A DNA stretch of 64,000 nucleotides, from NCBI GenBank assembly GCA_950097015.1, contig CATNEN010000002.1, positions 5,084,001 through 5,148,000 of the forward strand. Reading direction: 5' to 3'. Both the position numbers and the translations under genes were made by a program. This DNA comes from Macrostomum hystrix (taxonomy: Eukaryota; Animalia; Platyhelminthes). Within the stretch, counting starts at the first letter, position 1; each line of letters begins with the position of its first letter. Under the pieces are notes generated by a model, which worked only from the letters and a program-made list of their open reading frames with translations, ran no database searches and was not told where the DNA came from. This document shows, one piece after another, positions 10,269 through 43,823 of this stretch.

Positions 10269-11418
10269 TCAGAAGACCAGCAACTCAATCTCCATCAGGG
10301 AATAATTGGAGCCGTAGGGAAAGAACCAAATGATGCCCTGAGCGTACGGGCCACTAATAGCATCGGGGAAATTCTTGTACTTTCCGTTCGGATGAAATTT
10401 GAAACACGAAGAGAACCACCAGCCACCAAAGTAGTACATGGCACAGTTTGTTGCATGGGTATCGTGATCGGCGTCAAAGGTGCTGAACTGCGTGCCGTTG
10501 TGGGAAGAAATGCAGTCTCCGACTCCGGCAGAGGCAGAAAATCGTGAAATGCTGAGCGTGTAGTTTGTAGACTCAGGACCCACAGCGAAGCTTGAGTACT
10601 CAGCCCAGCTCTCGGTGTCGTTCCACAGCTTCATCAGGACTCGCAGCTTCCGACTTCCAGACTTGGTCATTGCGTACAAAGAGTTCAATCCTCAATTGGA
10701 AAAGATTGGAGAACTTTGAACTGTTCATACAAAATATGAAAATTGTAATTCAGTCGCAATAGTCCGACAACAATAATGCTGCAAAGTTGATCCAAAAAGG
10801 TTCCCAAAACTAGAAAATGACGACACTTTCGTTTAATTAATTTTACTAAGTTTCGGACGAAGTGAATTTTGTACTTTGAAGCCCCTACAGTTTAAAAACT
10901 CTTGATTACCGATCCAGTAGTTTGAGTGGGGTCCTTCGCCGAACTCATTTTGGTACTGAGTCCAGTTGCGGTAAAAGTCCACGGAGCCGGACACCCTGTG
11001 CTGCACGGTGGTCCAGCACTCACTGCTTGATGTCTGAATGGTGAAGTTTTAAGAGTATTGTGTGCAATTTATCATGAAAACGAATGCGCATTTTTCATTT
11101 CGATACTGCCGATATACTCACCCACACTCGCTGAGCTCCCTGGTTCGCATTGCGGCACTTCCTGCAGTGACTTAGGCCCAGGCGACAGCTGAAGTGAGTG
11201 CACAGCTTTGAGCTGGCGTTGAAGGCCACCATCTGCACGGAGGAGTCGGCAGCTGCGATGCATTGCAGCTCGAACTGTACAGAAAACCGGTGGACAAGCT
11301 CGTAGTCAGAGAGACTCTCCTGACTGGATGACCAGATGAGTTCGAACGATGTGCTCAGGGCACCAACTTGAAGAACTGAAATCCCTCTGAGCAGCAGGAC
11401 TATGGCCTGGGCGATCAT
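10269..11418 (-). CDS. FReD gene C, ~280 aa, intact
   Basis: Exons 11418-11122, 11033-10910 and 10690-10269; canonical splice sites; open frame; same motifs as gene A. Confidence 0.9.
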
Positions 11419-12478: not shown

Positions 12479-13857
12479 TCACAACAAAAGCATCTCAAAC
12501 TCCATCAGTGAGTAGTAGTAGCCATAGTTCATCCTCCAAATCACTCCTTGAGCATACGCGCCCCCGATGGCAACAGAGGAATCCTTGTACACACCGTTCG
12601 GGTGCGTGCAGTGGCAGGCGCTGAACCACCAGGCGCCAACATAAGACATTGCGCAGTTTGTCGATGAACCATCGTGATCGGCGTCCATAGTGCTGAAATT
12701 CCGGCCATTGCTACTGGAGAAGCAGTCTCCAATTCCAGGACTGGCAGAGAAGCCGGATACGCTCAGGCGGTATTTATCCAGTTCTGTGCTGATGGAGACG
12801 CTGGAGTACTCAGCCCAGCTCTCCGAGCCGTTCCAGGGCTTCATCAGGATCCGCATCTTTCGCGGCGCAGGTGACGTCAACCTGTGTAGCGCGTTTAGCC
12901 CTATGGTAAAGGCAAATGCATTTGGCATTGAGAAGTGCCGAGTAACCACATAGGGGGTAAGTAGCAGAGCACTCTAACGCGTTGGCTTCCCGTACGAAGG
13001 TCCCTGAGCTCGATTCCGCAGCGAGGCCACATTCATTTGGGGCGCAGCCGCGGAGAAAAGGCTTTGGGCTTGTCGTGCAATTTACGCCCTTGAGGGCCAA
13101 CCTCCAAGGCACAGTGAAGTGTACACTGCACACTGCCTCACGATGAGAAAGTCAGGGACAGATGCCCGCAGCCCTCGTGAAATACGATCGTATCGTTTTT
13201 ACAACTAGTTACACATTAAAACGAAACGCTGTGACCTTAAAACTCTAATCACCGTAATCTAGACCCAAAATACGGAACAAATAAGCCAGACATAGTTGCA
13301 TTTGTCCTGATGGCTCAAAATGGCTCTTAAAGTAGCATCAGAAAATCTACCAATCCAGTAGTTTCCGTCGGGCCCCTCGCCGAACTCGCTCTGGTACTGA
13401 GTCCAGTTGCGGTAGAAGTTCACCGAGCCGGACACCCTGTGCTGCACGGTGGTCCAGCACTCACTGCTGAATGTCTGCAAGGTTTCAATGAACGCGCATC
13501 CAGAGCACAGTTAGAAATCAGTTTATTTTGTGTCGATTCTGCACTCACCCAAACTCGCTTCAATCCACGGTTCACACTGCGGCACTTCCTGCAGTGACTC
13601 AGGCCCAGGCGACACTTAAAGTGAGTGCACAGGCCGGAGCTGAAGTTGAAGGCCGCGAGTTGCACAGTTGAGTCTCTGCTCGCAGTTGCGATGCACTGGA
13701 CTCTGGACCGCGCTTTGAACAAATTCACGACCTCATAATCCGAGAGGCTTTCACGACTCGACCACCATTTTTTCTCCGAGGTGGCAGCTTCTGGTGCAGG
13801 ATGCAGGACTGCTGCAAGCAGCAACAGGCTAGCTGGAACTACCTGCCAGCTCTGCAT
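12479..13857 (-). CDS. FReD gene D, ~284 aa, intact
   Basis: Exons 13857-13549, 13474-13351 and 12900-12479; canonical splice sites; signal peptide [18 protein letters not shown]. Confidence 0.9.
12952..13163 (+). mobile_element. SINE family 1, 3'-truncated copy in intron 2 of gene D
   Basis: Matches the head and first ~210 bp of the 2734 copy (GAGCTCGATTCCGC..GGGGCGCAGCCGCGGAGA..CTTGTCGTGCAATTTACGCCC). Confidence 0.85.
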
Positions 13858-15440: not shown

Positions 15441-16804
15441 ATGCAGTTAGCTACTCTTCTGGTGATGCTGTTGCATGTCTGAGATCCGCTGGCGGAAGCT
15501 ACTTCAACAATCCGAATATGGCGGCTCAGCTGGGAAAGCCTTCCTGATTACGAGGTGGTGACGTCGCTGAAGGCCAGTTCTGAAGTTGAATGCGGCGCAA
15601 AAGCAGTGATTCAGTGATTAAAGTGATTCAGGCGCACTGCTCCTGCTCTTTAACTCGAGCTTCGGTCTGTGCACTCTGTGCAAGTGTCGCATCGGTCTGA
15701 GCCACTGTAGAAAGTGCCGCCGTGTGAATCACGGAGCTCAGCAAGTGTGGGTGAGTCGGCCTTTTTATCCGTTTCTTAACGTTAAGGCGATTAGTGTCGA
15801 TTGCCTCCTTACAGACGGCCAGCGAAAAGTGCTGGACCACCGTGCAGCACAGGGTGTCCGGCTCTGTGGACTTCTACCGCAACTGGACTCAGTACCAGAG
15901 CGAATTCGGTGAAGGACCTGACGGAAACTACTGGATCGGTAAAGTACACTTTCGCACAGGGTCGTTTCACAAGCTCTAAATTTCACAAACCATAACTTTC
16001 CCAAAATCTAATTCTCACAAGACTTAATTTTGACAAAGTCGAAACACCGTGTGCAGAAAATTCACAAGCACTGAAGGTTCATCATGCTATTGAGGATATA
16101 ATGAATATAGCGCTTGTGGAAGCTTGTAAAGTTTTGAGCTTTTGCTGTTCTCTGCATGCCTTTTAGGCGTCGTAAAGTTTAGGGCTTTTGAAATTTTGTT
16201 GTTGTTAAATCTGCTGAACTGCTTATTTTTTCGATGTTGTAAATATTACGGGTGATAAAATTTAGGTTGTGTGAAAGATTCTCGTTTCGACGCTCTCCAA
16301 TTAATGGTTTGTGAAGGCGACCCTTTCGTGGCTTGCCGAAGGCTCGAGATACGGTTTCCAAAGCCGCTTTCGTATTTATAGGTTTGGAGTCGCTTCACGC
16401 CCTGACTGCGTCAAATCCCCGCAGGCTGAGGTTCCTGATGAAGCAGTGGAACGGTACGGGGAGTTGGGCTGAGTACTCCAGCTTCTCCGTGGGCCCAGAG
16501 TCAGATAACTACACTCTGACAGTGCCCGGCTTCTCAGGGAGTGCCGGGGTCGGCAACTGCTTATCCTACCACAATGGAATGCAGTTCACCACATTTGATG
16601 CCGACCATGACACCTATGAGCTCAACTGTGCTGCAGCGTTTCAACGGTGCCTGTTGGTTCACGGCTTGCATATGTGCTTTCCCGAATGGACAGTACAAGG
16701 CCTTCCCGGATGCGTTAAACACAACGTTTAGTCGGGGCATAATTTGGAAATTGAAGCATGGATACTACTATTCCCTGATGGAGGTCGAGATGTTGCTTGT
16801 TTAG
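15441..16804 (+). pseudogene. FReD gene E, inverted pseudogene
   Basis: Exons 15441-15750, 15815-15938 and 16382-16804. TGA at codon 14 (15480-15482); frameshifting duplication at ~15604-15630; +1 frameshift at ~16639 (NCAAAF / NGACWF). Confidence 0.85.
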
Positions 16805-18427: not shown

Positions 18428-19939
18428 TCATAAAACGAGCAGTTCAATTTCCTTCAGAGAGTAGTAGAAGCCGTAGTTGTAATGCCAGATGATGCCCTGC
18501 GCATAATCGCCTCCGATTGCATCTGCAAAGTTCTTGTACTGGCCGTTCGGGTGGGCGAAGAAGCAGCCGCCGAACCACCAGGCTCCGACGAAGGACACGG
18601 CGCAGTTTCCGCCCCAGATGTCGTTATCTGCATCGAAAGTGGTAAACTGTTGACCATTGCTCCTATCGGACAGCGCGTCACCAACTCCACTGCTGGCAGA
18701 GAATCCCGAGACACTCAGTCTGTACTTGTCGCTAGCGGGACCGATAACAAAGCTGGAGTACTCGGCCCAGCTTTTCGATCCGTCCCAAAGAGTCATTAAA
18801 AATCGGAGCTTGCGGCTTCCGGATGATGTGAACTTGTGCAGCCAGTCTAAACCTGATGACGGGTAGATGACGCAGACCACGTGATCAAAGTAAACACCAA
18901 AATATAAGTTTCTAAGTTCTCTAAATGCTGCTGTACAGTGTAAGAGAAGTATAATCCAAATAAACTAAGGCTATGAAAGTGGAGTGGTAAATGGAAGAGC
19001 GCAGTTAACGTGGTTGCTCCTCGCACAAAGGTCCATGAGCTCGATTCAGTGGCGAGACCATGCACCTTTATTTAAGGCGCAACGACGGATAGAAGGCTGG
19101 AGGCTTGTCGTGCAATATGCACCCCTTTCCGAGTGCAAAGACTCCCAGGTTTAATGAACCCCTGTGTGCACCCCTGTGTAAGTGTGTGTTTGCGTGCAGT
19201 ATCTGTGTGCCTGTGTGCTCAGGAGTCAGCGGAACGGGCAGAATAGTCTCCTCACTGGCTGGGGGTCTAGTGTCACTAATAATACTAATGAGCTATTATT
19301 TAGTAAGTATTATTTATTAATTTATACATTTTCATTTAATACAATTATTATTTTTATTAAATACAATGTTGTCAATATGTCAAACGCCAATGATCCTCTT
19401 GCAGCAAAACACTCTACCAATCCAGTAGTTTCCGTCGGGTCCCTCGCCGAACTCGCTCTGGTACTGAGTCCAGTTGCGATAAAAGTCCACCGAGCCGGAC
19501 ACCCTGTGCTGCATGGTGGTCCAGCACTCATTGACGGTTGTCTAAAAGCACAAAAAGTTCATGTGAATCGATTCCTTGAGAATATGCAGATTGAGAATAA
19601 CAAAGGTTGATGCCATAAGAGATACGTTTAGCTCACCCATACTTGCTGGCTACCCGTGGCAATTGACCGACAACTCATACAAGATCTCAACCCCAAGGGG
19701 CACCTGAGATGATAGCAGAGGCCAGAGCTAGAGTTAAACGCAACAAACTGCACAGCTAAATCTGTGCTGGCAGCTGCAATGCAGTCAGCAAGGTTTTCCA
19801 TGGTATTCGACCTTAGAGTCTCAAAGTCGAATAGATTGGACCGACTCAACCGCCAGGTACTTTCGATCGAGCCGCATTCCGCTCTGAAATGCCAAACCAA
19901 TCCTAGAAGCAGCAACGCACTCGTCGAAGCTTGCCACAT
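18428..19939 (-). CDS. FReD gene F, ~283 aa, intact; divergent exon 1
   Basis: Exons 19939-19637, 19541-19418 and 18852-18428; Cys block reads [16 protein letters not shown]; canonical splice sites. Confidence 0.9.
18981..19290 (+). mobile_element. SINE family 1 copy in intron 2 of gene F
   Basis: Head GAGCTCGATTC; body CTTGTCGTGCAAT..GGAGTCAGCGGAACGGGCAGAAT..GGTCTAGTGTCAC; (TAA)-type tail. Confidence 0.8.
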
Positions 19940-20889
19940 TTTATGAAGTCAGTATTTTGAGAGTTTTTGGCATGTGGCGAGTTGATCTTTATTTTTTTAC
20001 TAACTTTCAAGTCTGGCAGCTGCTTTTTAGAGCTTTCAAACTTTTTTCTGCTTTCTAGGTTTTATCTGACTGCAGATTGGTTGTTGTCAGTCACGTGGCC
20101 TTCTGTCTAACTCAAAGTCTGGATTTCTCAGAATTTTTTATCGCGAATCCAAGTGGGAATTAAGAAGAGCGCGACTGGCAGGTTGAGGCCGATTGAGGCT
20201 GAAAAGTCTCACCAAATCGACAACAACCGGCTAATTGTGTGACGTCAAAATTTGCACCTCTGAAACGTATCAAAGTTTATTGGAATCTTGCAGCAAGAAA
20301 ATAGTTTTCTGTTTGTAATTAGCACACATTTTTATCGCAAAGGTATTAAAAATTGCTGTTATAAGTGCTTCTGCTCCATACCTTGCCATTTGAGCAGTAT
20401 CAAATTTCTCTTTATCGGCTTCATCACCTGATCTTCTTTCCAGCTCTGTCACGTTAGAACTTGTGACTGCGACCAGCAATGCATCTTCTGCCACGCGGAA
20501 ATAAGGAGTTCAAGGTGAAGGACAAATTCAAAACTATAGACAGCAGAAGCGGCTATGAGTCCTGAATAGCAGGAGAGAAAAACAATGGAGTCACCTTGCA
20601 GCTTTGCTCATTGCTTTGAAGCACTGGCAATGAAAAGGGAGAGCTACATGCGAAGCTGCGTGGGAAGTTTCTACGAGAAAACGCATGTAAAACCCACTGC
20701 TGGTCGTCAAGGCAACCATGAGAGAAAAAGTAGGCGCTAAATGGTTTGCTTCATAACTTCATGCAGTTTGAAGAATGTTAATAAAATTTTAAGATAAATT
20801 ACAATGACAGTGAGAGTGAGCACACTCAATTTAATCTCATTTGTCCCAATACTCAACCCAAAAATGCAAAAAGACTGAGGCGATCGAAG

Positions 20890-21197
20890 CACACTTCGAT
20901 GGTCATCAACTCCGGCTTCTCAAACTCTTACTCTTTTATTAATCGCATGTTTACTTTATATGCTCCTCGATGAAGTTCTAAATTTAGACTTTGATTTCTT
21001 ATTGAGTCGCACTAAATTGAGTCCTTACAAAAAGAGACAGCAGTGCTGTTTTGCACAAAACAAACAGGTTAGGCTTGCATGAAATTTACTCACTCGCACA
21101 CAGGCAAAGAGTGGCGGCGGGGGTGGGTGACAGTGAAAGCGATGCTCAGCCAATAACAGGTTCAGGGGGCTAGAAAAAAGCAGGGTAAGAAACACTT
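20890..21197. mobile_element. Second copy of the MITE-like element seen at 4531, with a single internal motif
   Basis: GGCTTCTCAAACT start; ACTCGC..GGGGGTGGGTGACAGTGA..AGCCAATAAC; end AAAGCAGGGTAAGAAACAC. Confidence 0.4.
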
Positions 21198-21504
21198 TGC
21201 TTTTGCATAATAGGGGAGATGAAAAAAAATTTTAATCGACATTTAATGATTCACAGTAGTTTCTTCGAGTTTTTTAATTGCACGTGAGTAACAAAATACT
21301 TTAATCCAACTCTTTTGCAGGAATTTTAAGTAAGTCACGTGTTTTCTATTTTTTCTGTGAGGAATAAAAAAGATCACTGACCGATTTAACTACACCAACC
21401 AATACAGCTGCGTCAAAACTCTCGAACGAAACCAAACACGTGGGTCGTCTATTCCATCGATCCATTCGTCTTTAGAACCAATTTCCAACAATTGCAAAAG
21501 CAAT

Positions 21505-22653
21505 TCAGAAAAGCAGTAGCTCAATCTCCTGCAGTGAGTAGTATCTACTGTAGGGATATCTCCAAACGATGCCATTAGCCAGTTCGCCGCTAGTAGCGTC
21601 AGCGAAGTCGTGATAGATTCCGTTCGGGTTCGCGTCAAAGCAGGACGAGAACCACCAGCCGCTGCGCACCGTGAGAGCGCAGTTGTGGATCCAGGTGTCA
21701 TGGTCAGCATCGAAGGTGGAAAATGGTTCACCGTTCGATCGACTGGCCAGGGAGTCACCGACTCCTTCACTGGCGGAGAAGCCGGACAAGCTCAGCGTGT
21801 AGTTCTCGGACTCCGAGGCCACGGAGAAGCTGGAGTACTCAGCCCAGCTTTCAGTGCCATTCCACAGCTTCATCAGGATCCTCAGCTTCCGGCCTCTGTA
21901 CTGAGTTAGAGCATGAAGCGAGTTCAAACCTGTGGGATTGATCGAAATTTTAGATTCTATTCACTGTACACAAATATCACAAAATTTGTGAGTAGTTGTC
22001 ATCCAATAGAAGTCGCGCTCTAGTCTGCAATCTGAAACACAGAATAACATCCGACTATTCAAAACAAATCAAAACAGCGACTTTTTCACAACAAAGTTTT
22101 AAAATAGCAGAATCAATTAAAAGCGGTTGCTAAAGAATTTTTTTATACCAATCCAGTAGTTTCCGTCGGGTCCCTCGCCGAACTCGACCTGGTACTGAGT
22201 CCAGTTGCGGTAAAAGTTCACCGAGGCGGACACCCTGTGCTGCACGGTGGTCCAGCACTCACTGATGATGGCGATCTGAAAGCGAAATCATGTAGATGAA
22301 TAAAGTCAGTGCTCAAGAAAGCTCATTGAGCTGTCACTCACCCACACTCGCTGAGCTCCCTGGTTCGCATTGCGGCACTTCCTGCAGTGACTCAGGCCCA
22401 GGCGACACCTGAAGTGAGTGCACAGCCTTGAGCTGGCATTGAAGGCCACCAGCTGCGCTGCGTAGTCGATTGTTGCTTCAACAATGCAGTCCATTTCCGT
22501 AGCAGTTGTGTACGACTTGGCGGCCTCATAATCTGCGAGGCTGTCAAGACTCGATCTCCATTTTCGTTCAACCGAACTGACTTCACTGGCGTTGCAGTTC
22601 AAGACTGCAGCTAGCTGGACGAGAGGAATGATCGCAATCGGATTCAGTCGCAT
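21505..22653 (-). CDS. FReD gene G, ~287 aa, intact
   Basis: Start MRLNPIA at 22653; exons 22653-22342, 22275-22149 (127 nt, one duplicated ATC codon) and 21929-21505. Confidence 0.9.
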
Positions 22654-23099
22654 ACTGCACTTCTTCCTGCTTTGGCAAAAGCTTTTGAAATTTTCTCTTC
22701 GCCAAGCAAACAATTTACTTAACAGTTTTCAGTCGTTTGTCTTCACTTGAATTGTTTTGCGTGACAACTAACTCTTCTGAAAAGCTCAGTTTTATCGAAA
22801 TTTCTACTATTGCGTCTGAATTAAAAATTTAATGGGGTTCAGGAAAAATGTAGCATAATTCCTTCATTTTTCTTTAAGTGGCACTTCACATTCTGGTTAG
22901 ACTGTTAATTAGTGTAGCAGGTATGCTGGCAGACAAAGTCTAGCTTTTTAGATGCTTCGCTAACAAAATCCCTCAATACCCTCGGTAATCAAACTAACTA
23001 GAAGACTAGCTCTGTACCATTCAGGTAGAGGCCTTCCAGCGCAGACATTTTCTCTGAATTTCGGTCAGAAGTTTTTATGCCCTTGCCTGGAATACACTT
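22145..23099. repeat. ~950-bp segment duplicated at 29157-30097 (promoter, exon 1, intron 1 and exon 2 of genes G and I)
   Basis: Near-identity by eye (8 substitutions in the 312-nt exon 1, one local indel patch upstream). Identity stops 4 nt into intron 2 and after ..GCCTGGAATACACTT upstream. Confidence 0.95.
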
Positions 23100-23207
23100 A
23101 CGTCCCACATCAGCAGTGGCCAGCTAAAAGGTGTTGTCATGCACTAGTGTCAGCAATACTTCCTGGATCTACGAGTCAGTATTGTTTACAGACCCATACA
23201 GACCCAT

Positions 23208-23345
23208 ACTAATAATAATAATAATTGCAGGAGGGCTGCGGGCAATGGCACATCATTTGGTAACAATAGACCTGCAGCCAGCGAGTAGGCAATTTTGCCC
23301 ATTTCGCTGACTCCTGAGCACACACGCACACAGATACTGTACGGA
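23208..23345 (-). mobile_element. SINE family 1, 3' fragment with (TTA)n tail
   Basis: Reverse complement of the 2960-3098 part of the full copy. Confidence 0.8.
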
Positions 23346-23365
23346 GGCAGAGTTACCCAAAGTGG

Positions 23366-24052
23366 TGTTGTGCCGTGCATATGCACTTTGCCCTGCTCTG
23401 TGTGTGACCCGTGTTTATGTCTGTCCAACCCCTTCCTGCGCCCGTGCCTGCCTAGGTCAGGGTTGGTAAGAGGCTTACGCCTCAACCCTGGCCTAGCCCC
23501 TCTCTCTGCTCTGCGCCCACCTGCCCATGCCCAAGCGTTGCGCAAGCCCTGTCACGCCACCTCTCCACCCCTCCCCCGCCTGGACCATTCATATTGGCTG
23601 GGGGCCGGTAAGTCCTGTGGCCCAGGGTTTGTGGATCGTTTCTCTCTCCCCCTTCTCCATCCCTGTACCGTAAGTAAATAAGCTTGTTTTTCTATCTGCA
23701 AATCCTCGCGCTTGTGTTATCTATCTGCCAGTCCGGGTCTTGTTTAATATTCACGCGCTGCCAATGCACGCCGTTCCGCTATCAGCTTGAGTGAGAAAGC
23801 ATAGGTGAGTTCGTGTCTTCTTTCTTCCGGGAGTGCCGCGTTGGGCCGGTGGGAAGACTGAGTGAACTTTCGCTCCGTTAGGGACCTGCTGAGACGAGTG
23901 AACTCTCGCTAGTCCCAGGGTGGTTTTTTCTGCGAACTCTCGCGGAACCAATCCGACTTGTTAGGCCTAGGCAAGGGTTGGGCTGGGACCTGGGTGTCTC
24001 GGGCGGTGGACCCAATCCCATCTCCCGTCGGCCAATAGGCCAAGACACAACA
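23366..24052. mobile_element. LTR-like element interrupting or abutting the SINE fragment
   Basis: Ends TGTTGTG...CACAACA (7-bp inverted); flanks GTGG/GTAG; GC-rich with CCAAT boxes and TAAATAA. No coding capacity seen. Confidence 0.35.
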
Positions 24053-24344
24053 GTAGCGGAAAATTCACTCACTCAGTCACTCAGAGCTGACAAAATTCAC
24101 TATATACTACTGAGAGCATTGAAGTTGGACTTTGAACTCAGGATATTCACTTAAAAAATACAAGCAAAAGAGCTATAGGAAAGTGGTCCCTTCAACTCCC
24201 CTTGCACCGGATTGGCCGTGGCACCCGGCCAATAGGAATGACGCCAGCCACCACCCCCGACCAAGATCCAAACCCACCCGACCCCAAAACCCACCCCAAC
24301 CCAAACAAGGACCCTACTATCCTACTGTCCACCCCATTCCAATA

Positions 24345-24706
24345 ACTTATAATGATGATGATAATAATAATCATAAGAATAACAGCAGGTCGGCGACAAT
24401 GGCACATCATATGGTGAAAGTAGATCCGCAGCCAGCGACGTGGCCATGTAAACTCGCACACAGATACTGTACGCTGGCACACGCTCACACAGGTGCGTAC
24501 ATCTGCCCTGACTTTCGCATCGTCAGGCAGTGTAAAATCTCACAGTGCCTTGGGGGTTGGCCCTCAAGGCCATAAATTGCACGACAAGCCCCCAAGCCTT
24601 CTCTCCGCGGCTGCGCCCCAAATGCATGTGACCTCGCCGCGGAATCGAGCTCAGGGACCTTGGTGCGAGAGGCAGACCTGATAGACCTCTCTACCACGCA
24701 CCCTCT
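24345..24706 (-). mobile_element. SINE family 1 copy with internal deletion
   Basis: Reverse complement: tRNA-like head GGTGCGTGGTAGAGAGG..GAGCTCGATTCCGC, family body, (TTA/TCA)n tail. Confidence 0.85.
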
Positions 24707-25465
24707 AGTCCCAAAAATTTAATCAAGGAAAACTGAAAGGTTCAAATCAATATAAGCAAAGGATCAAAAGGCGCAGAAAATATGAAGGCCTATTGTTTCT
24801 CAAAACACTAAAGACGACAATAAACTCAACTCGAGAAGTCCAATTTATTTTCAAGGTCGATCGACCCATATTTTAGCAGTTTCTTCCAGTTTTTTTAGTA
24901 CATCCAACCATGAATTCATATCTCGAGCATTTATAGCTTCTTAATCAGATATTAAAAGCCATATAAAGGACGAAAAAATCTAGATTAAAACCGACAATTG
25001 ATATGATATCACACACAAAAACTTAATTCGCAACTTATCCATTCCCAAGATATTACTTTTTATTAAAAACAAAAAAATTCGTCTGACTACTCACAGTAAA
25101 GGCAAAAGCTACTTTCATACTCGTATGAGACAATCAGCAGCCCAATTTATACATTTCGTAGAAACTGAAGTACTCAATTAGATAGCGAAATATTTGAAGG
25201 AAAATCTGTAGGTCCTGGCCTTTTATTCCATACTGTAAGTGAAAACACTTAGTGAATAGCAAGTTTTTTAAGTACATCGTTTGGAAAAAAGTTGTTTAAA
25301 AATGTTTTAACGTCAGTATATAAAAATATTAGTATAATAGTTGATTACCGAAAGTAACCACAAGCTAAAAGTTCCGTACGTGGGTCCTGCTTTTGATAAT
25401 TAAAAAAACTTTAAAGCATATATTCAAGTTCGATATTTTTGCCTTCCTACATAAAATCAAACCTT

Positions 25466-26766
25466 TTAAATAATCAGCATTTCAATCTCTTTCAGTGAAT
25501 AATGATAGCTGAATGGGACACTCCACATGATACCCTGTGCTTTCGGACCATCGATCGCATCAACAAAGTTCTTGTACTGCCCGTTCGGATTAGCCAGGTA
25601 GCACGATTTGTACCACCAGGCGCCAGAAAAGGACACCGCACAGTTTTCTGTCTTGGCATCGTGATCCGCATCCATTGTGGAGAACTGCAAGCCGTCGCTG
25701 TAAGTCAGGCAGTCTCCCACCCCGCGTGAAGCAGAGAAGCCTGAAATGCTGAGCGTGTAGTTTGTGAACTCGGAACCCACTGAGAAGCTGGAGTACTCGG
25801 CCCAATACTCAGTGTCATTCCACAGCTTCATCAGTACCCTCAGCTTCCGGACTGATGGCGAAGTCAGGGCATGCAGCGAGTCAAGTCCTGTAGATAAATG
25901 TGTCAATAAGATAGGGAATTTTCCGGAATCTGATTGTTGCCACTAAACTGCTATGCGCCTACCAATCCAGTAGTTTCTGTCGGGTCCCTCGCCGAACTCT
26001 CTCTGGTACTGAGTCCAGTTGCGGTAAAAGTCCACCGAGCCGGACACCCTGTGCTGCACGGTGGTCCAGCACTCACTGATGGCTGCACTTTGCAGCAGCT
26101 GAAATTGAGGCAACATTGCTTCGCAAAAGAATTCAGACAGCTTAATAATAATAATAACAATAATTGCAGGAGGGCTGTGGGCAATGGCACGTTATTTAGT
26201 GACACAAGACTACGCAGGCAAACGCTCACACAAGTGTGTACATCTGCCCTGACATTTTCATCGTCAGGCAGTATAAAATCTCACTGTGCCTTGGAGGTTG
26301 GCCCTCAAGGGTGTAAATTGCACGACAAGCCCCCAAGCCTTCTCTCCGCGGCTGCGCCCCAAATGAATGTGGCCTCGCCGTGGAATCTAACTTAGGAACC
26401 GTGGTGCCACCGACCCCCATTCAGTCAGCTTGTTTAGTGGAAAACAAGTGACTTTGAAAGCTCGCTCACCCAAACATGCTGATTTTCCCTGCTCTCACTG
26501 TAGCATCTTCTGCAGTGGCTCAGGCCCAGGCGACACCTGAAGTGAGTGCACAGCCTTGAGCTGGCATTGAAGGCCACCAGCTGCACAGTTGAGTCTTGGC
26601 TAGCAGCTGCGGAGCACTCGCTTGGAGACTCGGCGCGGTGCGACGTCCCGGCTTCGTAGCGAGATGGGTTGTCGCGGCTTGACAGCCAGACTTTAACGGT
26701 TGTTGGAGAGGCCGGCTGCAGGAGCAGTGCTAGCAGAAGAGCCAGTGAGGCATTGGCGAATCGCAT
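25466..26766 (-). CDS. FReD gene H, ~284 aa, intact
   Basis: Exons 26766-26470, 26098-25963 (in-frame acceptor TTTCAG|CTG gives 4 extra codons) and 25887-25466. Confidence 0.85.
26142..26420 (-). mobile_element. SINE family 1 copy in intron 1 of gene H
   Basis: Reverse complement of the family body, with a (TTA)n tail at 26142-26165. Confidence 0.85.
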
Positions 26767-27287
26767 TCCGTGTATCGCTTGCGTGAGATGATTTTTGCAA
26801 GCAAAGAAACTTTGAATCTCTTATATGCGATTTCGAATAAAATGAATAAAAAAAACTTTCAGTGTGCTAATCAAAGAACTAGAAATGTCGAGGACAAGAT
26901 AGGTAATTGGATATTTATACGTTCTATTTACAGACAGCTCGTGACCCGGAAAATTTTAGTATTTGCGGATGTGAGCCAACATAAAAATGTTACGTTTACA
27001 TGTGCAAAATGCACTAATTTGTTAACTTGTTAGTTTGCTAATTTGCTTGCGTAACTCACCTTTTGTGTTTTTTGAGAGATCTGCTGTCGTGGGTCTGAGA
27101 ACTGTCAAGATTTCTAGGCTCTATTAAAAAATATGTCACAGCGAATGGCAGTGTGTTTATGGAGCCTCGATAAGCAATTCTGATTGGTTCGCTTAACATG
27201 AGATTATTTTGGATGTCTACTTGCATTGTATTCGAGAAAAATTTCTAGCATGATGACTTTTAAAAAACTAACAATGGTCAAAATTTC

Positions 27288-27614
27288 AGGGGAGAGCAGT
27301 TGATGTGTTGCCTCTCGCACCGAGGTCCCTGAGCTCGACTCCGCGGCGATGCGACATTCATTTGGGGCGCAGCCGTGGAGAGAAGGCTTGAGGGCTTTTA
27401 TGTCATGTGCAATTTACGCCCTTGAGGGCCAACCTCCAAGGTACATAGAGAGTGCACACTGCCTGACAATGAGAAAGTCAGGGCAGATGTACACACCTGT
27501 GTGTGTGTGCTCAGGAGTCAGCAGAATGGGCAGAATTGCTTCCTCGCTGGCTACGGTTCTAGTGTCACCAAATGATGCCATTGCCCGCAGCCCTCCTTTA
27601 ATTATTATTATTAT
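27288..27614 (+). mobile_element. SINE family 1 copy
   Basis: GCCTCTCGCACCGAGGTCCCTGAGCTCGACTCC head, family body, (TTA)n tail. Confidence 0.85.
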
Positions 27615-28557
27615 CATTTTTGTTTGTTTATTATTAGTTTCGATTTCCGCCTTCAACATTTATATTACATTTATAAAATAAGCGCACACTTTTCCTGAAT
27701 TATGAACTTTTGTTTTGTTCGGCTGTTTAGTCCATGGACTGGGGGTGCCACACCCACCGTCAACTACCCCAGCTAATGCAAGCTTGCTTGCAGTACTCAT
27801 TTAATAGCTTTACTAATGAATAACATAGGTAACAATGGTCAAGACAGTGTTAACTGTGTTGTTATGTGACACAATTTTCCATTGTAGTCGAATCGAACTC
27901 TCAGCTTTCAAGTCGTGAGTTAAACCAACTTGGTTTTACATATGTATTGTTAATTTATGAAGGCCCGTTCGCAGAAAAATGGTGTATTTACAATGTCACT
28001 TATTCTCATATTATATATGTTCATAACAGCACAAATTGACAAGACAGAACAGATACAATAAAAAACCCTTTGGACTGCGCAAATTTTTATTATGTTTACT
28101 TTCCAAGACGACTTGAATCAGTATGTACGAGTAAGAATGTTAGATCGTGAAGACTTTTGTAACTTCCTTATGTATATCTATACCAAGGTTATATAATGCT
28201 TCTCCACTCTGCGTCAATAGTTATACCAAATAATAGTTTGGAACTTTTTTATTCAAGCAAGGTGAATAGTTCAAACAGGAATTTCCTTTTAAGTTAAAAA
28301 ATATTGCTGTAGAAGAAGCAGCGAAGTTCCTTTTCAAAGATATCACAAAATTGCAAAATGTTTGTATCGGGTGAACTGCATGACAGTTCGTTCATGAATA
28401 ATTGCCAGCAAAATTCTTGCATGAAATTGCTGTCGGGACAGCATAACGGCTCAGGTAATTTTAATGACGATTGATGCGTATCTGCCAGGTCAACACTTTT
28501 TCTGCTTATTGTGTCTCATTGTTGCGAACTTGACAGGTGGCATAGGGCATCGGCTTG

Positions 28558-29662
28558 TTAGTTAATCAGCATTTCTATCTCTTTAAGTGAGTAGTAGAAT
28601 CCTGAAGGAACACTCCAGATGATGCCCTGAGCATATGAGCCTCCGATAGCAATTGGAAAGTCCTTGAACTGTCCATTCGGATGAAATGCGAAGCACGATA
28701 CGAACCACCAGGCACCATTGTACATTACAGCACAGTTTCCCGAATAATAATCGTGATCAGCGTCAAATGTACTGAACTGAGTATTGTTGTGGAACGACAT
28801 GCAGTCCCCGACACCAGGAGAAGCAGAAAATCCAAAAACACTGAGCTTGTAGTTTGTAGACTCGGAACCCACGGCGAAGTTCGAGTACTCAGCCCAGCTC
28901 TCGGTGTCATTCCACAGCTTCATAAGTACTCGCAGCTTCCGATCTCCAGACTTTGTCAAGGTGTGTAGCATGTTCAGACCTGAACAGAAATTGTTTGTTT
29001 AAATGCAGCAGTTATGATCAGAAAATTCCCAAGGAACCTCCATGAAAACGAATGAGCCACAACGAAGTTAGCACTCAATCGTTACGCATAACCCCCTATT
29101 AATTTCCTTGGTCAGATGGGCTCGCGCAATCTCTCTCGCCTCTAATTTTTAGCATCATACCAATCCAGTAGTTTCCGTCGGGTCCCTCGCCGAACTCGCT
29201 CTGGTACTGAGTCCAGTTGCGGTAAAAGTTCACCGAGGCGGACACCCTGTGCTGCACGGTGGTCCAGCACTCACTGATGGCGATCTGAAAGTGAAATCAT
29301 GTAGATGAATAAAGTCAGTGCTCAAGAAAGCTCATTGAGCTGTCACTCACCCACACTCGCTGAGTTCCCTGGTTCGCATTGCGGCACTTCCTGCAGTGGC
29401 TCAGGCCCAGGCGACACCTGAAGTGAGTGCACAGCCTTGAGCTGGCATTGAAGGCCACCAGCTGCGCTGCGTAGTCGATTGTTGCTTTAACAATGCAGTC
29501 CACTTCCGTGGCAGTTGTGTACGACTTGGCGACCTCATAATCTGCGAGGCTGTCAAGACTCGATCTCCATTTTCGTTCAACCGAACTGACTTCAATGGCA
29601 TTGCAGTTCAAGACTGCAGCTAGCTGGACGAGAGGAATGATCGCAATCGGATTCAGTCGCAT
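28558..29662 (-). CDS. FReD gene I, ~285 aa, intact
   Basis: Exons 29662-29351, 29284-29161 and 28979-28558. Exons 1-2 are near-identical to gene G; exon 3 is different. Confidence 0.9.
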
Positions 29663-30712
29663 ACTGCACTTCTTCCTGCTTTGGCAAAAGCTTTTGAAAT
29701 TTTCTCTTCGCCAAGCAAACAATTTACTTAACAGTTTTCAGTCGTTTGTCTTCACTTGAATTGTTTTGCGTGACAACTAACTCTTCTGAAAAGCCCAGTT
29801 TTTTTCGAAATTTCTACTATTGCGTCTGAATTAAAAATTTAATGAGGCCATGAATAATTGTAGCATATAGCATAAGTGGCACTTCACATTCTGGTTAGAC
29901 TGTTAATTAGTGTAGCAGGTATGCTGGCAGACAAGTCTAGCTTTTTAGATGCTTCGCTAACAAAATCCCTCAATACCCTCGGTAATCAAACTAACTAGAA
30001 GACTAGCTCTGTACCATTCAGGTAGAGGCCTTCCAGCGCAGACATTTTTCTCTGAATTTCGGTCAGAAGTTTTTATGCCCTTGCCTGGAATACACTTCTC
30101 CGTCAATGATGCCCCTGATGATCCAGGAAGCTGGACTGCTGTGACTGCTACCGTCTGAGATCGCCGCATTAAGTCGATTCTACAAAACCAGCGAGCAGAA
30201 GAGAGTACAGTACGTATAAGTTTTCCAGGTAGAATCACCCGAAAACAATTTTCAAACACAGAATTTGAATACTGTGACATTTTCGCTCGTACTCACATTC
30301 AAATATGAGCAAGCGAATATTTTTTTAGGAAAATTCTGCTTCATTCTCACTTCAAATTTTGTTGTCGTCTATAAAAACAGCTGGTATTATAAACGAAATT
30401 CTTCGTTTTACCTAAATTTGGCTATTTACGCTCGTAGCTTGCAACTTGCCACTGATCAGGTCGACAAGATGACTAAAATATAACAGCTAGGTTTTGTCCT
30501 AAAATGTCCAGCCTAACAACTCAAGGTTTATACCCAACGCATCTCAGAATCTAACCTATCTCTCAGCAAGTTGTCTAATCCGTTACGATGCTTGACTGAC
30601 TAGCAAGTAGCAATGATATAGCCAAACGAAACCGATGTCTTCAAAACAATGAGAGGTGAGACAGTCATGCATGATTGATACGCTGTTAAAAAACTATATT
30701 ATTGTCAAGTTC

Positions 30713-30852
30713 TAGCTAACCTCACCTACCTGAATTGATGTACAATTAGCACCTGTCGATATCGAGCGAGCTGGGGTTGCCTTTCTTGGGAATCGGCACG
30801 GTAATTGACAGGTGCTAATTGTACACCAATTCAGGTAGGTGAGGTAGGCTAC
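30713..30852. mobile_element. Small MITE or foldback with a 38-bp inverted repeat
   Basis: CCTCACCTACCTGAATTGATGTACAATTAGCACCTGTC (30720-30757) pairs with 30807-30844 with one mismatch. Confidence 0.7.
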
Positions 30853-30857
30853 TCGTA

Positions 30858-31790
30858 CCGTCCTGGGCGCTCTACGATTGAACAAGTCACCGCAATCCGC
30901 TGCGTCATTGAGACCTGCAGAACGCGTCAGCTGTCAGGTCTCAATCGGCTTCGTCGACTTCAGAAAAGCATTTGATTCTGTAATCAGGTCCGCGATTGCA
31001 GCGGGTCTGGCTCAGCACGGAGTACCCTGGCTGATCATCAAGGTGTTCATGGACTTCTCTTGCGGCTTATGCGCCTTCATTAACACCAGTGATGGCCCAA
31101 CTGAGGAATTCCTAACGACATCCGGAGTCCTCCAAGGCGACACGCTGTATCCCTTCCTCTTTGTGGTTGTGGTTGACTTCGTGTTGCGACAGGCCATCAG
31201 CGAAGAGGACAGCTTCATCCTTGCGCGCCAGCGCAGCTCTCGCTAACCGGAAGTGCTTCTCGGCTGCCTCGCGTATGCTGACGACATCGCGTTCCTGTGC
31301 CGTGACCCCGAGACGGCTCAGTGAGCCCTGCATCGCCTGGCGCTGGAAAGCTCAAAAGTCGAACTGCAGATCAACGCCACAAAGACCAAGGTGCTGTGCG
31401 TTTGCACTGCAACAAGGCCCGACCTCTACCTGCCGGACGGCGTACCTGTGGACGCCTACGATGATTTCTGCGACCTAAGGTATGTCGGTAATAAGCGCTG
31501 ACGTAACTGTGGAGATACGCATGTGTATGGCCTGGCGCGCCACGCAGCTGTTGCGCTCGATCTTCAAATCCGAGGACACTGACTTTCTCAAGCTGTCCTT
31601 GTTCCAAGCAGCAGTGCTTCTCCTGGCCTATGGCAGGAAGCGGTTCCTTTAACGCCGGCGCGCGATGCCACCATCGATGCTGCTCACCAGCTGCATGTGT
31701 GCTGCTCTCGGCATCAGCGCTAACGAGACCATCAGCAATTAAGACTTCTACGCTCGCAGCGGCAGGAAGTCGTTGTCCACCACCAGGCTA
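30858..31790 (+). mobile_element. Degenerate non-LTR retrotransposon (LINE, RTE-like) reverse transcriptase fragment
   Basis: RPGRSTIEQV, FVDFRKAFDSV, GVLQGDTLYPFLF, LAYADDI and QINATKTKVL motifs, with stops and frameshifts. Confidence 0.9.
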
Positions 31791-32453
31791 CACTTATTTA
31801 GCATATATGAATTTGTATATTTTACACACTGACAGGGTACGTTAGGTTTAAAATATTGGATAAAAAAGTTATCATCAGGACAGCTGCTAGAATAACAGTT
31901 AACTTTAATAAACTGCAGACACTTGCACTCAATGCAGGTTTACAGAGCACTCAGTGAAAGCAGTCTGTACTACAGACAGCACCTGTTTAATTTCCACGTG
32001 CTATACCAGATCAATGAGTTTATTTTAGAGTACACACAATAAACAAGAAAGTTCTTAAAAAAACAGTAGAAAAGTTGACACATAATTATGATAACAAAAA
32101 GTTGAACTCAGTGCCTTAAGCTGTAATTTTAGGAACATAGACTGATTTAAGTAGTCGACAATAAAATATTTCTTAAGAATTACGACTCCTTGACTATTTG
32201 TGTGTCAGAGATTCAGCATTCAGGTCTATCATACAATAGTGTAGGGGATTTAAAATTAAAGTTACATAAAATTCAACCCAAGCGAAAGACAATTTGCTAG
32301 ATAATGGCATAATGAGGGTCATTTGGCATATGAAAGGAGATAATGTCTGAATTGGGGGATGATTTAGCATATTTGATTAATTGACCAACTAAGCCGACTA
32401 AACCTGGGCAGAAAGCGCATTTTTTAACTCAAGTATCACCAGGTGCTAGAGAT

Positions 32454-33053
32454 CTATCTATCTATCTATTTTGCAGGGGGGCCCGGGGCACTTGTCGCAC
32501 AAGCGACGGAGCGGCACGCCCCCGACCGGCGAACTAGGCGCTTTTGCGCCCATCGCGCCGCCTCCCCTGAGCAGGCACCACACACAGCAGCACAGACCAG
32601 CCGGGGAGGGCAGGAGGCACCCAGAATAGGCAGCAGTGTCCCACACCCCAGCCCCACACGCACATAGCAGACCAAGCCGGGGCGGAAGGCTGATAAGAAA
32701 TCAGTCCTCAGGGGGGGCCGGGTGATGAGTGTACACTTATCCAATCGCGCTGACGGAAGTCCAGAAAGCGCGCGGCGGTGTACACCCGCCCTCCAGCCAC
32801 CCCCCGCAAGGTCTCACGCCCCAGCGCCAACGCACACGCCACACAACTCACGCAACGCAGAACAGGCACACAGAGGTAGGAGCGAAGCTATTATTTCAAG
32901 CTTTGATTGCACGAAATATGGTGCACCTCCGCCGGTCGCTACTGTCCAAACCCCCCAACAAGCCCCGAAATTAATCGTGAATTGAAGGGTAAATCGAACT
33001 AGCGTCCTTTGGAGTGCGAGGCAGCGACGTTAGCCGCTGACCCACTCGCCCCT
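32454..33053 (-). mobile_element. tRNA-derived SINE family 3, 600 bp, recent insertion
   Basis: Perfect 13-bp target-site duplication AGGTGCTAGAGAT (32441-32453 and 33054-33066); head AGGGGCGAGTGGGTCAGCGG..AGTTCGATTT; (ATAG)n tail. Confidence 0.85.
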
Positions 33054-38508: not shown

Positions 38509-41002
38509 TTAAGCTTTTCCTACGTCATGGGGCTCAACTTTCCGCCCAAACAGCAGCCGACCCAGCGATGCCGCCAGGACGAGCAGCTCGCTGAGGGTGA
38601 GAAAGCTCGCGCCGAGCCAGACTCCCAGTGCACCGCCGAAGTCGCTGAGCAGGTCGTGAATCTGGAATTTTCTCGACACAGCGTAGTGCAGCATGGTGTC
38701 GGACTGGTAGTGGATGAACACCTTTGATGAATAGGTTGGTTAGAGGAGTAAGTGTTGGAAAGTATACGTATGTTGTGATGAGTTGTCTATAATCATATAG
38801 ATGTGGTTCAAGTTTTACCTTTAAAATAACATTTTTACCTTTATAACTTTAAAATATTTACTTCCGAAAATGTCTTCCCGAATCACTATAAAATGACACC
38901 GCATATAAACGCGAACCGCCAAAAGTGCTCGTGAGAGTACCTCATAAGTTGTTTTTGCATTTTCAAATAAGAACTCACCCTAAGAAAGTACCATGAATCT
39001 GTTTTATTGTTGAGCACACCTTCCGGATAAGCATCGACAATCTCGGATGTGTCGTTAACCATCGCTTTCCTAAGAGCATTGAGAGCATTTTTCAGGTACT
39101 CCGCAGTCCTGATCTCAGACGAGTAGTTCCGATGGCCGCCAGGTGTCAGGTGGGGCCAGCCGTAGCTGTCGGCGTCAATGACGCGCTTGTACCTGACGCA
39201 GGCATCCAGTGGGCAGCCGGTCACCTTGGAGCCGTTGCAGATCGAGTTATGCTTGATTCGATTGCTGAGGTTGCGCTGAATTTCGAGAGCTCTCGCGAAC
39301 TCGGCGTCGCTGGGAAAGTCCGCCTCAAACTTGGCGCAGTCTCGATATCGGTTGGCGATCTCCGAGAAAACGATGATGCCCGAGTAGGAGCAGTTGAAGT
39401 CCCTCACAATGATCTGGGAGCACTTCAGAGCATTGCAGTGGGCCTGGCTGTAATTGATTTTGAACTTGCTTATTACATCCTCAACGAGGTAGCTGACATC
39501 ACTTGCGCAGTCACTTGAGTCTGTGTTTTCGTACATTGTTGGCGAGACCTGCAGCGAAGAACAGAACAGAACACATCATGCAGTGCTAAAATCTCGATTG
39601 CTTCAGGTTCGATTTTAACATCTTAGGGAAAAGTGTGAGTGGCAGAGCTGAAGAGCGACTATCGCACTTGGGACTAAGATCGTTTAATTTGGTGCACGGC
39701 CGCTGGGAGGTTTGGGCGCTTGTCGTGTGCAATTTACGCCCATATGACGGCTGACACCCCCAAAGGCACACTGAGAGTGTACACTGTCAGATACTGAAAA
39801 CGTCATGGCGGATATAAAGTCATCCTTGTGAATCCGAGGTTTGCATGCTCACATCGGGGTCAGCGTCGCCTTTCACCAGTGCATACAGATATTGTTATCA
39901 AATTACGGCTCATGCACACTGCCGTGAAACCACGAGTTTTTTATGCAATTTTTTTAATATTCTTACGAGTGGTGATATAAAATGTGCAATCGTGCATTTT
40001 GGTCTCGTTTGATAATGTAGTGTGGAAGAGCCTGGGGAAATAGAAAATAACATCAGAGAGCCTTTCAGTCACCTCTATGTCGTAGTGAAGGCCGTGACTG
40101 AGCTGCATGCTCTTCGTGCCAAGGACGGTGTGAGAGTTGATTGCGTCAGTACTGTCCACAAAAAACAGCTGAAGCGTATCGTCGCCGCTCTCCTGCAGAA
40201 GCAGCTTCAGCGCCTCGTTCTTTGCCCAGTCAGTTTCAAAGACGCTGTTAAGCGAATTGCTTGTCCGCGGCCGCTTAAACAGCAGCAGCTTCATGGCTTC
40301 CTGTCCAAAGGGCACCTGACTGAGCTTTAGCCGGTGAATGAGGTCCTGAAGAATCAGTCGGTAGCAGACCATGAGCTTATCGTTCACATCCGCCAGGTAG
40401 CTGCGAAAGTCGTAGCACTTTCCGTCAATCTGGTCGCCGTAAGTGAAGCCCACAATGACATCCTGGGGCCGAGGCCGCACTTCTCTGGCTATGGGCAGCC
40501 GGTAGAACAGGCGCTTGAAATGAGCCGTGTAGGACACCTGTCCCTTATCCTGACCGGCCTTCAGACTGACATTTAGGTAGCGCCTGTAGGCTGACTCCAG
40601 CTCTCTCCTAGCCGAGTCGTTCAACAGACGCAGTCGATAGGTTGAAACCAAGTCGCTGTTGCACAGTACAATGTCTGGCAGGGTTGCGGGAATGCTGACC
40701 TCCGTCATGCTCATGGTTGTGGGGAAGTTGACGTACTGTGACGTCAGCACGTACAGGTGGTACACGGACGCAACCAAACACGCTGAAATCAGCAGCATCC
40801 AGAGAATTCGAGCCCCCAGCGAGTGGGACTTGACGCACTGCCCAACACCGTGGGTGCTGGTGCTGCTGAGCCATTCCGAAATCACCAGCTTTGCGCCATT
40901 GGACGGCGACACTGAAGTACTCGCCATCTGTTGCGGCGGCTGCGGCTGCGGCTTCACCTGCAGCTGGTCATGCTGATAGAAGCCGCTGTCAGAGTTCTCC
41001 AT
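38509..41002 (-). CDS. DEG/ENaC (amiloride-sensitive sodium channel family) subunit, 3 exons, ~570 aa
   Basis: Exons 41002-40073, 39548-38979 and 38721-38509, all phase 0. STHG pre-TM1 motif, TM1, LPDIVLCN, Cys-rich thumb, TM2 LLSDFGGALGVWLGASFLTLSE with the GAS filter. Confidence 0.9.
39630..39865 (+). mobile_element. SINE family 1, old degenerate copy in ENaC intron 1
   Basis: GTGGCAGAGC..CTTGTCGTGTGCAATTTACGCCC..AGGCACACTGAGAGTGTACACTG. Confidence 0.6.
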
Positions 41003-42065: not shown

Positions 42066-43823
42066 CTAGAGAAGGAGCATCTCAACTTCCATGAGAGAAT
42101 AGTTGAAGCCGAATGGCTTGCTCCAGATGAGTCCCTGGCCAGAGCTGCTCAGAGCAGCTGGTAAGTTCTGATAAGCTCCGTTCAGCTGGGCGTTGAAGAA
42201 GCAGCTGGGTCCGTACCACCAGGCTCCGCGGTAGTGTTTGGCGCAGTCTCTCTCCGCTTCAAATGGATAGTCTTTGGTAATGAACGCGTGGCTGCTAGAG
42301 TTGGCTAAGGCATCACCGATGCCCCAACTGCCTGTAAATCCGCTCAAACTCAAATAGTAACTGGGCCCTTTTACTGAGAAGCTGGCATATTGGGCCCAGA
42401 ATTCGCTACCGTTCCACAGCTTCATCAGAATGCTCAGCTGCCGGCTCGTGTCCTTAGTCAGGCTGTCCAGATTTTTCAGTCCTGAAAATGCACTGGCTTT
42501 GTATATCTTCGTTAACATTGCGGGATTGTGCTGGGGGTGGGTGGCAGAGCGGTTTATGTGTTGCCTCTCGCGCCAAGGTCCCTGAGCTCGATTTTGCGGC
42601 GAGGCCACATTCATTTGGGGTGCACCCGCGGAGAGAAGGCTTGGGGGCTTGTCGTGCGATTTACGCCCTTCAGGACCAAACTCCAAAGCACAGTGGAGAG
42701 TGTACACTGCCTGACAATGAGAAAATCAGGGCAGATTACACACCTGTTCCTGTGTGCTCAGGAGTCAGCGAAATGGGCAGAATTGCCTTCTCGCTGGCTG
42801 CGGGTCTAGTGTCACCATATAGTGTGCCGTTGCCCACAGCCTTCCTGCAGTTATTATTTGTTTTATGCGGCTATTCATTGCCTCTGTAAATGAGTAACTG
42901 CAGCTCACCGATCCAGTAGTTTCCATTTTCATCCTGGCCAAACGGATTGTTTTTGTAGTCATTGAAGCTCCTATCGAAACTAACGCTATCCGACACTCGG
43001 TGCTGTATCGTTATCCAACAAGCTGTGCTTGTAGTCTGAAAATATTTATTTCTTTACTCAAAGTAAAAGCACTTTATAAGTTGCACCTCAAAATTTGGAA
43101 CATTTTCGGCCTGATTTGATTAATTCGATCAACGTAAACTAAGGAATTTCCCCATAGTGAACTAACTTGACAAATAATCGCACCTGTTAGTTGAGACATT
43201 GCTCCCAATCATTTCGCCAATTATCCCCCAATCACTTGGGAAATTATTTCATCGGCAGAAAAACTATCATCATCATTTTGGCAAGTTACCCCTTGTTGAC
43301 AGATCCACATTTTGTTTTTCTAGTTGTCACTGGCAAATTATCCCCCTCAGTTGAAATCCCATCAGCTGGCAGTTATTCTGTCCTGTCTGAGGTCCCGCGT
43401 ACAAGAAAGCCCATGCTGGAAGTTCGTGTGTCTAAAATTCGATCCGGACAAATCTAAAAGCTGTGCTAAACATGCATTCAGCGAGAGTGGCATTTTATTT
43501 TACAACTTTAACAGGCTTACCCAGACCGCTTGGTTTCCGCGGTGTCGGTTGCGACACTTTCCGCAGTGCTTGAGGCCCAGACGACAGCGGAACACCTGGC
43601 AGAGCCCGGTGGCCGCATCGAATGTGGACAGGTGAGCGGAGTCCTCTCGGCTGCTGACAACCTGGCACTGGACGTCCGACCTTACAGACTGGGAGTTGAT
43701 TAATTCATAGTCGGCCAGGTTGTCGAAGCTTTTCGTCCAGATTTTCGGCTGCTCGTCTGTGTTGAGCTCCTGACAATGAGCCATGCTGAATAGGATCAGC
43801 AGGAGGCACAAAATTTGGCGCAT
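42066..43823 (-). CDS. FReD gene J, ~281 aa, intact, divergent outlier
   Basis: Start MRQILC at 43823; exons 43823-43521, 43035-42909 (TTSTACWITIQHRVSDSVSFDRSFNDYKNNPFGQDENGNYWIG) and 42481-42066; same intron phases as A-I. Confidence 0.88.
42535..42862 (+). mobile_element. SINE family 1, full-length copy in intron 2 of gene J
   Basis: GGGTGGCAGAGCGG head, family body, CTGCAGTTATTAT tail. Confidence 0.85.

Follow-up and report, generated by a model that had tools for sequence, protein, structure and literature searches.

The present analysis concerns a 64,000-nucleotide stretch of the genome of the flatworm Macrostomum hystrix (assembly GCA_950097015.1, contig CATNEN010000002.1, positions 5,084,001 to 5,148,000 of the forward strand), referred to as the window and numbered from its first letter. 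Searches with tblastn identified ten genes in the window, designated A to J, which are paralogs of one another; each has three exons and encodes a fibrinogen C-terminal domain. Two of these genes, G and I, have nearly identical 5' parts that are joined to widely different third exons. Together with H they are arranged in tandem and in the same orientation. The exon limits of G and I, like the mosaic itself, were read off the assembled sequence. In both genes the reading frames are open and the introns start with GT and end with AG.

Domain and homology searches were run exon by exon. The Fibrinogen_C family (PF00147; cut-off 22 bits) was matched by exon 3 of G with 102.9 bits, by exon 3 of I with 110.9 bits and by exon 2 with 31.4 bits, and exons 2 and 3 together span positions 41-218 of the model (exon 3 covering 78 to 216 or 218). 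By the scoring of PF00147, both genes belong to this family. Exon 1 matched no Pfam family, and the canonical start of the A-subdomain (model positions 1-40) was therefore not recovered; for the same reason, no immunoglobulin superfamily (IgSF) domain was found upstream of the fibrinogen domain. The exon 1 peptide matched only 15 cluster representatives among 1.8 billion proteins, and the Cys-rich end of this exon is a lineage-specific replacement. Matches of exon 3 in the PDB included angiopoietin, ficolin and tachylectin 5A, with which the B and P subdomains align. Going by these structures, we take the region encoded by exon 3 to comprise the Ca2+ site and the ligand pocket, and the original prediction, made from the nucleotide sequence of the window, was right in linking exon 3 to ligand binding: this exon (Pfam positions 78-216) encodes the portion of the fibrinogen domain that putatively binds ligand and Ca2+. 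A word search led from a full-length relative to about 40 Macrostomum lignano proteins described as ‘Fibrinogen C-terminal domain-containing’. All named relatives recovered in this way were from M. lignano, and they are 52-68% identical to the genes of the window, none exceeding 68%. G and I represent secreted fibrinogen-related (FReD) genes of the lectin type, with a presumed lectin function.

A repeat search, blastn and pairwise MAFFT alignment showed that positions 22145-23099 of G match positions 29157-30097 of I. The identity of about 97% given in the original prediction was reproduced, with 25 mismatches in 939 aligned bases (97.3%) and, by MAFFT count, 5 indel events. The similarity extends over all segments of this tract: 14 of 433 positions differ in the 5' flank (96.8% identity), 1 of 66 in intron 1, and 8 of 312 in exon 1, where the predicted eight substitutions, five of them changing amino acids and three synonymous, were all recovered (synonymous divergence dS 0.042, non-synonymous divergence dN 0.021). 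Intron 1 is only 33-60% identical to the first introns of the other paralogs. Exon 2 had been proposed to be invariant, but it is not so between G and I: there are 2 mismatches in 124 positions and a one-codon indel (22268-22270), with a GT/AG dinucleotide difference at 22187-22188 that exchanges Val for Ser. An excess of change in exon 1 over the non-coding DNA of the tract was not significant (Fisher p=0.058). In the flank, 12 of the 14 mismatches are clustered in a single 40-nt patch that also contains a 12-nt indel (22835-22874 in G, 29845-29872 in I), and outside this patch the flank is about 99.5% identical.

On both sides, this similarity ends abruptly. In the 3' direction it stops after the first four nucleotides of intron 2 (GTAT), exactly as had been described, and the remainder of intron 2 cannot be aligned, its 47% identity corresponding to the random level. 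The products of exon 3 are indeed widely different, with 61% identity at the DNA level and 58% at the protein level, and both peptides quoted in the original prediction are present. Synonymous differences in exon 3 are saturated (proportion of synonymous differences, pS, 0.76). The mismatch density of the 5' coding part (10 of 436) thus contrasts sharply with that of exon 3 (165 of 427; Fisher p=4e-46). It should be noted that the limits of exon 3 and intron 2 used for these segment statistics were off by about 5 nt, which did not materially alter any figure. In the 5' direction, the identity ends at 23099 in G and 30097 in I, 445 bp before the ATG, and the flanks beyond are unrelated. As judged from these comparisons, the tract is young, the sequence to either side of it is unrelated or saturated, and both loci have stayed in place, as is expected of interlocus gene conversion.

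Separate phylogenies of exon 1 and exon 3 had been expected to be incongruent, and this was borne out. The maximum-likelihood tree of exon 3 placed I in a clade with H, B and C, in the arrangement H,(B,C,I), with support values of 96/96. G fell outside this clade, and its exon 3 stands apart from that of every other paralog in the tree. Forcing G and I together in the exon 3 tree cost 25 log-likelihood units and was rejected by the approximately unbiased (AU) test (p=0.00027). Conversely, the variable front of exon 1 joined G and I with support values of 97/96, and for this part a grouping of C, H and I was rejected (AU p=3.5e-7). The exon 1 and exon 3 trees are therefore significantly incongruent. 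Together with the contrast in mismatch density, this indicates that the mosaic is real at the sequence level. A Sawyer-type permutation test for runs of identity, applied to all pairs, was significant for many of them, but as it is confounded by the low-variation core that the genes share, its outcome is of descriptive value only.

The original prediction placed the breakpoint at the exon 2 donor. This position is only apparent. From 22217 to the end of exon 2, a stretch of 69 nt, and through the following GTA, A, D, F and H are likewise identical or differ by one base, and because several paralogs agree there, the seeming breakpoint at the donor does not distinguish G and I from the others. 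The last site exclusive to these two genes is 22226, the site at 22218 being common to D as well. The GT at 22187-22188 is unique to G: the first base is A in I and in all seven other A-H paralogs that were compared, and the second base is G in I and in most of these seven. The sequence comparisons thus place the join within 22145-22217. It would lie most simply at 22189-22217, that is, inside exon 2 and at least 40 nt upstream of the donor, because a dinucleotide difference that predates the event is a simpler assumption than a double mutation in a tract of 97% identity.

The upstream end of the tract is of a different kind. When the 445-bp flank was compared by local alignment, I scored 383, whereas the seven other paralogs included in the comparison (B was not tested) scored 12-17, which is within the range of 11-21 obtained with shuffled sequences. 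No blastn match to the flanks beyond the tract end was found elsewhere in the window, nor was a relic of exon 1 found upstream of G or I. Introns are unalignable even among the closest relatives by exon 3, intron 2 of C and I being 36% identical. It is therefore unlikely that the old G and I genes shared alignable upstream DNA before the event, and the upstream end looks like an illegitimate junction. In terms of pre-existing homology, the 3' end of the tract lies in the homogenised exon 2, and the DNA at the 5' end is shared by none of the other paralogs tested.

Tracts of discordant identity are present elsewhere in the array as well. Exon 2 of A to I (e.g. 5087-5200, 13352-13465, 19419-19532 and 25964-26077) shows 84-96% DNA identity across the nine paralogs. 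Among A, D, F, G, H and I its dS is 0-0.2, while the dS of exon 3 exceeds 1 for every pair. Exon 2 of J (42910-43026), with 60% identity, is outside this homogenised set. At the end of exon 1, C (11122-11235) and G (22342-22452) show 95.5% identity over the last 110 nt, compared to 47% for the front of the exon; over the same stretch, C and I are 93.6% identical (dS 0.08). By its sequence, the C-G stretch qualifies as a second, short conversion-like tract, which ends at the exon 1 donor. Yet another tract, of at least 90% identity, connects B (about 7140-7540) and C (about 10620-11026); it extends from exon 2 across intron 2 (91%) and enters the first half of exon 3. Exon 3 of B carries in-frame stops. 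As the B-C tract crosses the exon 2 donor, this donor is not a general breakpoint. Moreover, the tract ends vary from pair to pair, which is the pattern of ordinary, repeated conversion.

The positions of the genes and their parts are compiled in the Table. E is the sole member of the family on the plus strand and its matches to exons 1 and 3 are each broken across two frames; it is probably a pseudogene. Between I and J the FReD array is broken by an unrelated gene, an open reading frame at 39941-41002 on the minus strand with a match (E=6.5e-13) to PF00858, the amiloride-sensitive sodium channel family. An interspersed repeat of about 350 bp, copies of which are 77-91% identical, occurs in the array both within introns and in spacers; one copy is found near the upstream junction of G but not at it. 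The DNA upstream of I contains an imperfect palindrome of about 139-144 nt (30713-30851), for which blastn gave 75% self-complementarity. It is followed by a decayed reverse-transcriptase fragment on the plus strand (30878-31246; RVT_1, 25.8 bits with a cut-off of 29.6) that reads away from I. A scan of positions 19900-32500, the only stretch compared with Rfam, gave no match.

Table. Positions of the fibrinogen-related genes, of the parts of G and I and of the interspersed repeat in the window.
Feature	Positions	Strand	Remarks
Gene A	3990-5515		tblastn
Gene B	6799-7753		tblastn
Gene C	10284-11406		tblastn
Gene D	12491-13791		tblastn
Gene E	15492-16798	+	tblastn
Gene F	18434-19882		tblastn
Gene G	21505-22653	-	tblastn
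Gene H	25469-26688	-	tblastn; single paralog between I and G
Gene I	28558-29662	-	tblastn
Gene J	42069-43826		tblastn
G, shared 5' flank	22654-23099	-	445 bp before ATG; presumed promoter and 5' untranslated region
G, exon 1	22342-22653	-	Phase 0; 104 codons: signal peptide, variable N-terminal part, conserved Cys-rich end; translation and tblastn
G, intron 1	22276-22341	-	GT..AG; within the shared tract
G, exon 2	22149-22275	-	Fibrinogen_C positions 41-77; holds the 3' recombination interval
G, intron 2	21930-22148	-	Unalignable with intron 2 of I
G, exon 3 and stop	21505-21929	-	Fibrinogen_C positions 78-216, B and P subdomains; Pfam E=3e-29
I, shared 5' flank	29663-30097	-	
I, exon 1	29351-29662	-	
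I, intron 1	29285-29350	-	
I, exon 2	29161-29284	-	One codon shorter than exon 2 of G
I, intron 2	28980-29160	-	
I, exon 3 and stop	28558-28979	-	Pfam E=1e-31; groups with H, B and C
Repeat of about 350 bp, copies	23206-23349, 24361-24707, 26134-26407 (H intron 1), 27309-27618, 2733-3101, 42535-42858, 12951-13170, 19020-19279		

Taken together, the sequences suggest that the mosaic of G and I probably arose through a conversion-type transfer of about 0.95 kb between two old tandem paralogs. In a single ectopic copy event, recent relative to the age of the genes, this piece would have been moved from one gene to the other. Besides exon 1, intron 1 and the 445 bp of flanking DNA on the 5' side, it would have included no less than the first 50 nt of exon 2 (22226-22275). 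The front end of the recipient gene would have been replaced by it, with the recipient's own intron 2 and exon 3 remaining untouched. Such an event may have started with a break, in whose repair the paralog was invaded at exon 2 and synthesis went on through the intron 1, exon 1 and flank of the donor; the far end would then have been captured by non-homologous joining, and the 3' end resolved by homology in exon 2. This exon would be the natural homologous anchor, because its synonymous divergence among A, D, F, G, H and I is so much lower than that of exon 3. We infer the repair pathway, the direction of the transfer and the function of the flank as a promoter. One-ended invasion and long-tract conversion are established pathways (reviewed in PMC4888836). 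The original prediction had left the choice between conversion and unequal crossover, and it is the conversion-type copy anchored in exon 2 that agrees with the data, while a simple crossover is at odds with the stop of the identity after 445 bp and with the single H gene. It had also been proposed that the ligand-binding module was swapped. Since the 5' cassette is the young part, the moved part is more likely to be the promoter with the N-terminus than the binding module.

Several observations weigh against this view. The non-homologous junction at the 5' end shows neither clear microhomology nor another signature of repair, and a later deletion or insertion next to it could hide a duplication that was originally longer. 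In addition, the divergent 40-nt patch at 22835-22874 lies inside the tract; it could represent a secondary event, patchy repair or a cluster of mutations. Lastly, when the amino-acid differences between G and I were polarised against 26 relatives, the result was mixed and did not tell donor and recipient apart. For this reason we dropped the idea, suggested by branch lengths, that all changes had occurred on the G branch.

An unequal crossover in exon 2 between misaligned paralogs, which would have generated a hybrid gene and duplicated DNA, with a later deletion beyond position -445, has in its favour that exon 2 is the best homologous target for such a crossover and that the same-direction tandem of G, H and I suits it. 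However, identity would then be expected to run on upstream, whereas that between G and I stops 445 bp before the ATG. A duplicated H would be expected as well, but H is present once, and the window contains no second gene with an exon 3 of the I type or the G type and no match for either upstream flank. As this model moreover requires two events and a lucky deletion endpoint at -445, we regard it as unlikely. A 5' part younger than the 3' part would also result if G and I were recent duplicates of a whole gene and intron 2 and exon 3 of one of them had been overwritten from a third paralog, and the B-C tract demonstrates that intron 2 can be crossed by tracts in this array. Yet the donor in such a scenario should be at least 97% identical to one exon 3, whereas among the third exons of the window identity does not exceed 75% with that of I and 65% with that of G. 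Two events would again be needed, and one tract end would once more have to lie where no homology can be recognised, this time in the 3' flank. This succession of events appears improbable, and slightly more so than the crossover.

Assembly artefacts, such as a mis-join or a false duplication in the paralog array, deserve attention, because Macrostomum assemblies contain separately assembled haplotypes and have been polished with short reads (PMC10468722). Nevertheless, the two copies differ at 25 sites and by 5 indels, hence they do not represent a collapse, and alleles would have exon 3 in common. A 0.95-kb repeat of 97% identity is also short relative to long reads, and the intact frames and splice sites of both chimeras argue against an artefact, which we therefore consider very improbable. 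Equally improbable in our opinion is a recurrent exchange of cassettes in the germline or the soma, in which the invariant core would be a hinge dedicated to bringing 5' and 3' halves together in new pairs. The presence of several discordant tracts in one array (G-I, C-G/I and B-C) and the conservation of the core at synonymous sites would fit this scenario, but the tract ends vary by pair, that of B and C running past the donor and intron 2, as ordinary conversion gives, and the window contains a single pairing of the G/I type. Accordingly small is our expectation that the core, i.e. the end of exon 1 plus exon 2 with its invariance at synonymous sites, is a recombination hinge that is reused in the germline or even somatically to combine cassettes of promoter and N-terminus with different exons for the binding domain. 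If this were true, the hinge core would amount to a combinatorial diversification system for the lectin repertoire.

Classical exon shuffling is the intronic recombination by which autonomous, phase-compatible modules are moved between unrelated genes. The mosaic of G and I resembles it in that a new combination of exons was placed under one promoter. Still, the label of exon shuffling, which the original prediction used, does not fit. The partners are paralogs, and their join falls within or at the edge of an exon, whereas shuffling would place it in an intron. Moreover, what was exchanged is only a part, about two thirds in the case of exon 3, of a single domain. Hybrid genes that arise through non-allelic homologous recombination (NAHR) between tandem paralogs are known from the red/green opsin, glycophorin, CYP2D6/2D7 and KIR genes. 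As in G and I, the 5' and 3' parts of such a hybrid derive from different paralogs and meet in a conserved exon. However, these hybrids arise with a change in copy number, and identity continues to the edge of the duplicated unit, whereas the copy number of G and I looks unchanged and the identity stops after 445 bp.

A further parallel is interlocus gene conversion limited to certain regions in tandem families of immune-type lectins or receptors, as in the FREP3 variants of Biomphalaria, which were derived by gene conversion and point mutation (PMC7588048). They, too, involve a fibrinogen-related domain and old paralogs with near-identical internal tracts and trees that are incongruent between parts. 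In contrast to FREP3, the tract of G and I also covers non-coding DNA, namely intron 1 plus the 5' flank, and has its upstream end in sequence that is not homologous, and unlike the Biomphalaria FREPs, G and I lack IgSF domains. For the sea urchin Sp185/333 (SpTransformer) clusters, recombination, gene conversion and segmental duplication have been proposed as the source of mosaics (PMC3091723, PMC5103432). These clusters are similar in consisting of small immune-type genes with mosaics, but they represent a different family in which repeats and elements are mosaically arranged within one exon and flanking microsatellites are implicated, none of which are found at G and I. The present mosaic is thus a clean case of a known process and not a new mechanism. 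The modest additions are a tract that includes the presumed promoter and the one end that is non-homologous.

As a consequence of the exchange, the presumed promoter, the signal peptide, the N-terminal segment and the A-subdomain are common to G and I, which are set apart by their B and P subdomains. One fold is cut through in this way and no whole domain is moved; compatibility of the two halves is probably maintained by the conserved core. The two genes would provide a natural example of a receptor-type gene made in one step, by placing a presumed promoter, signal peptide and N-terminal part onto the binding half of an old paralog. This matters for annotation and orthology calls, as the tree that is obtained depends on the exon that is used. 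More generally, our findings show patchwork evolution of the FReD arrays of Macrostomum, which are restricted to this lineage, and this is relevant to the evolution of lectin repertoires in flatworms.

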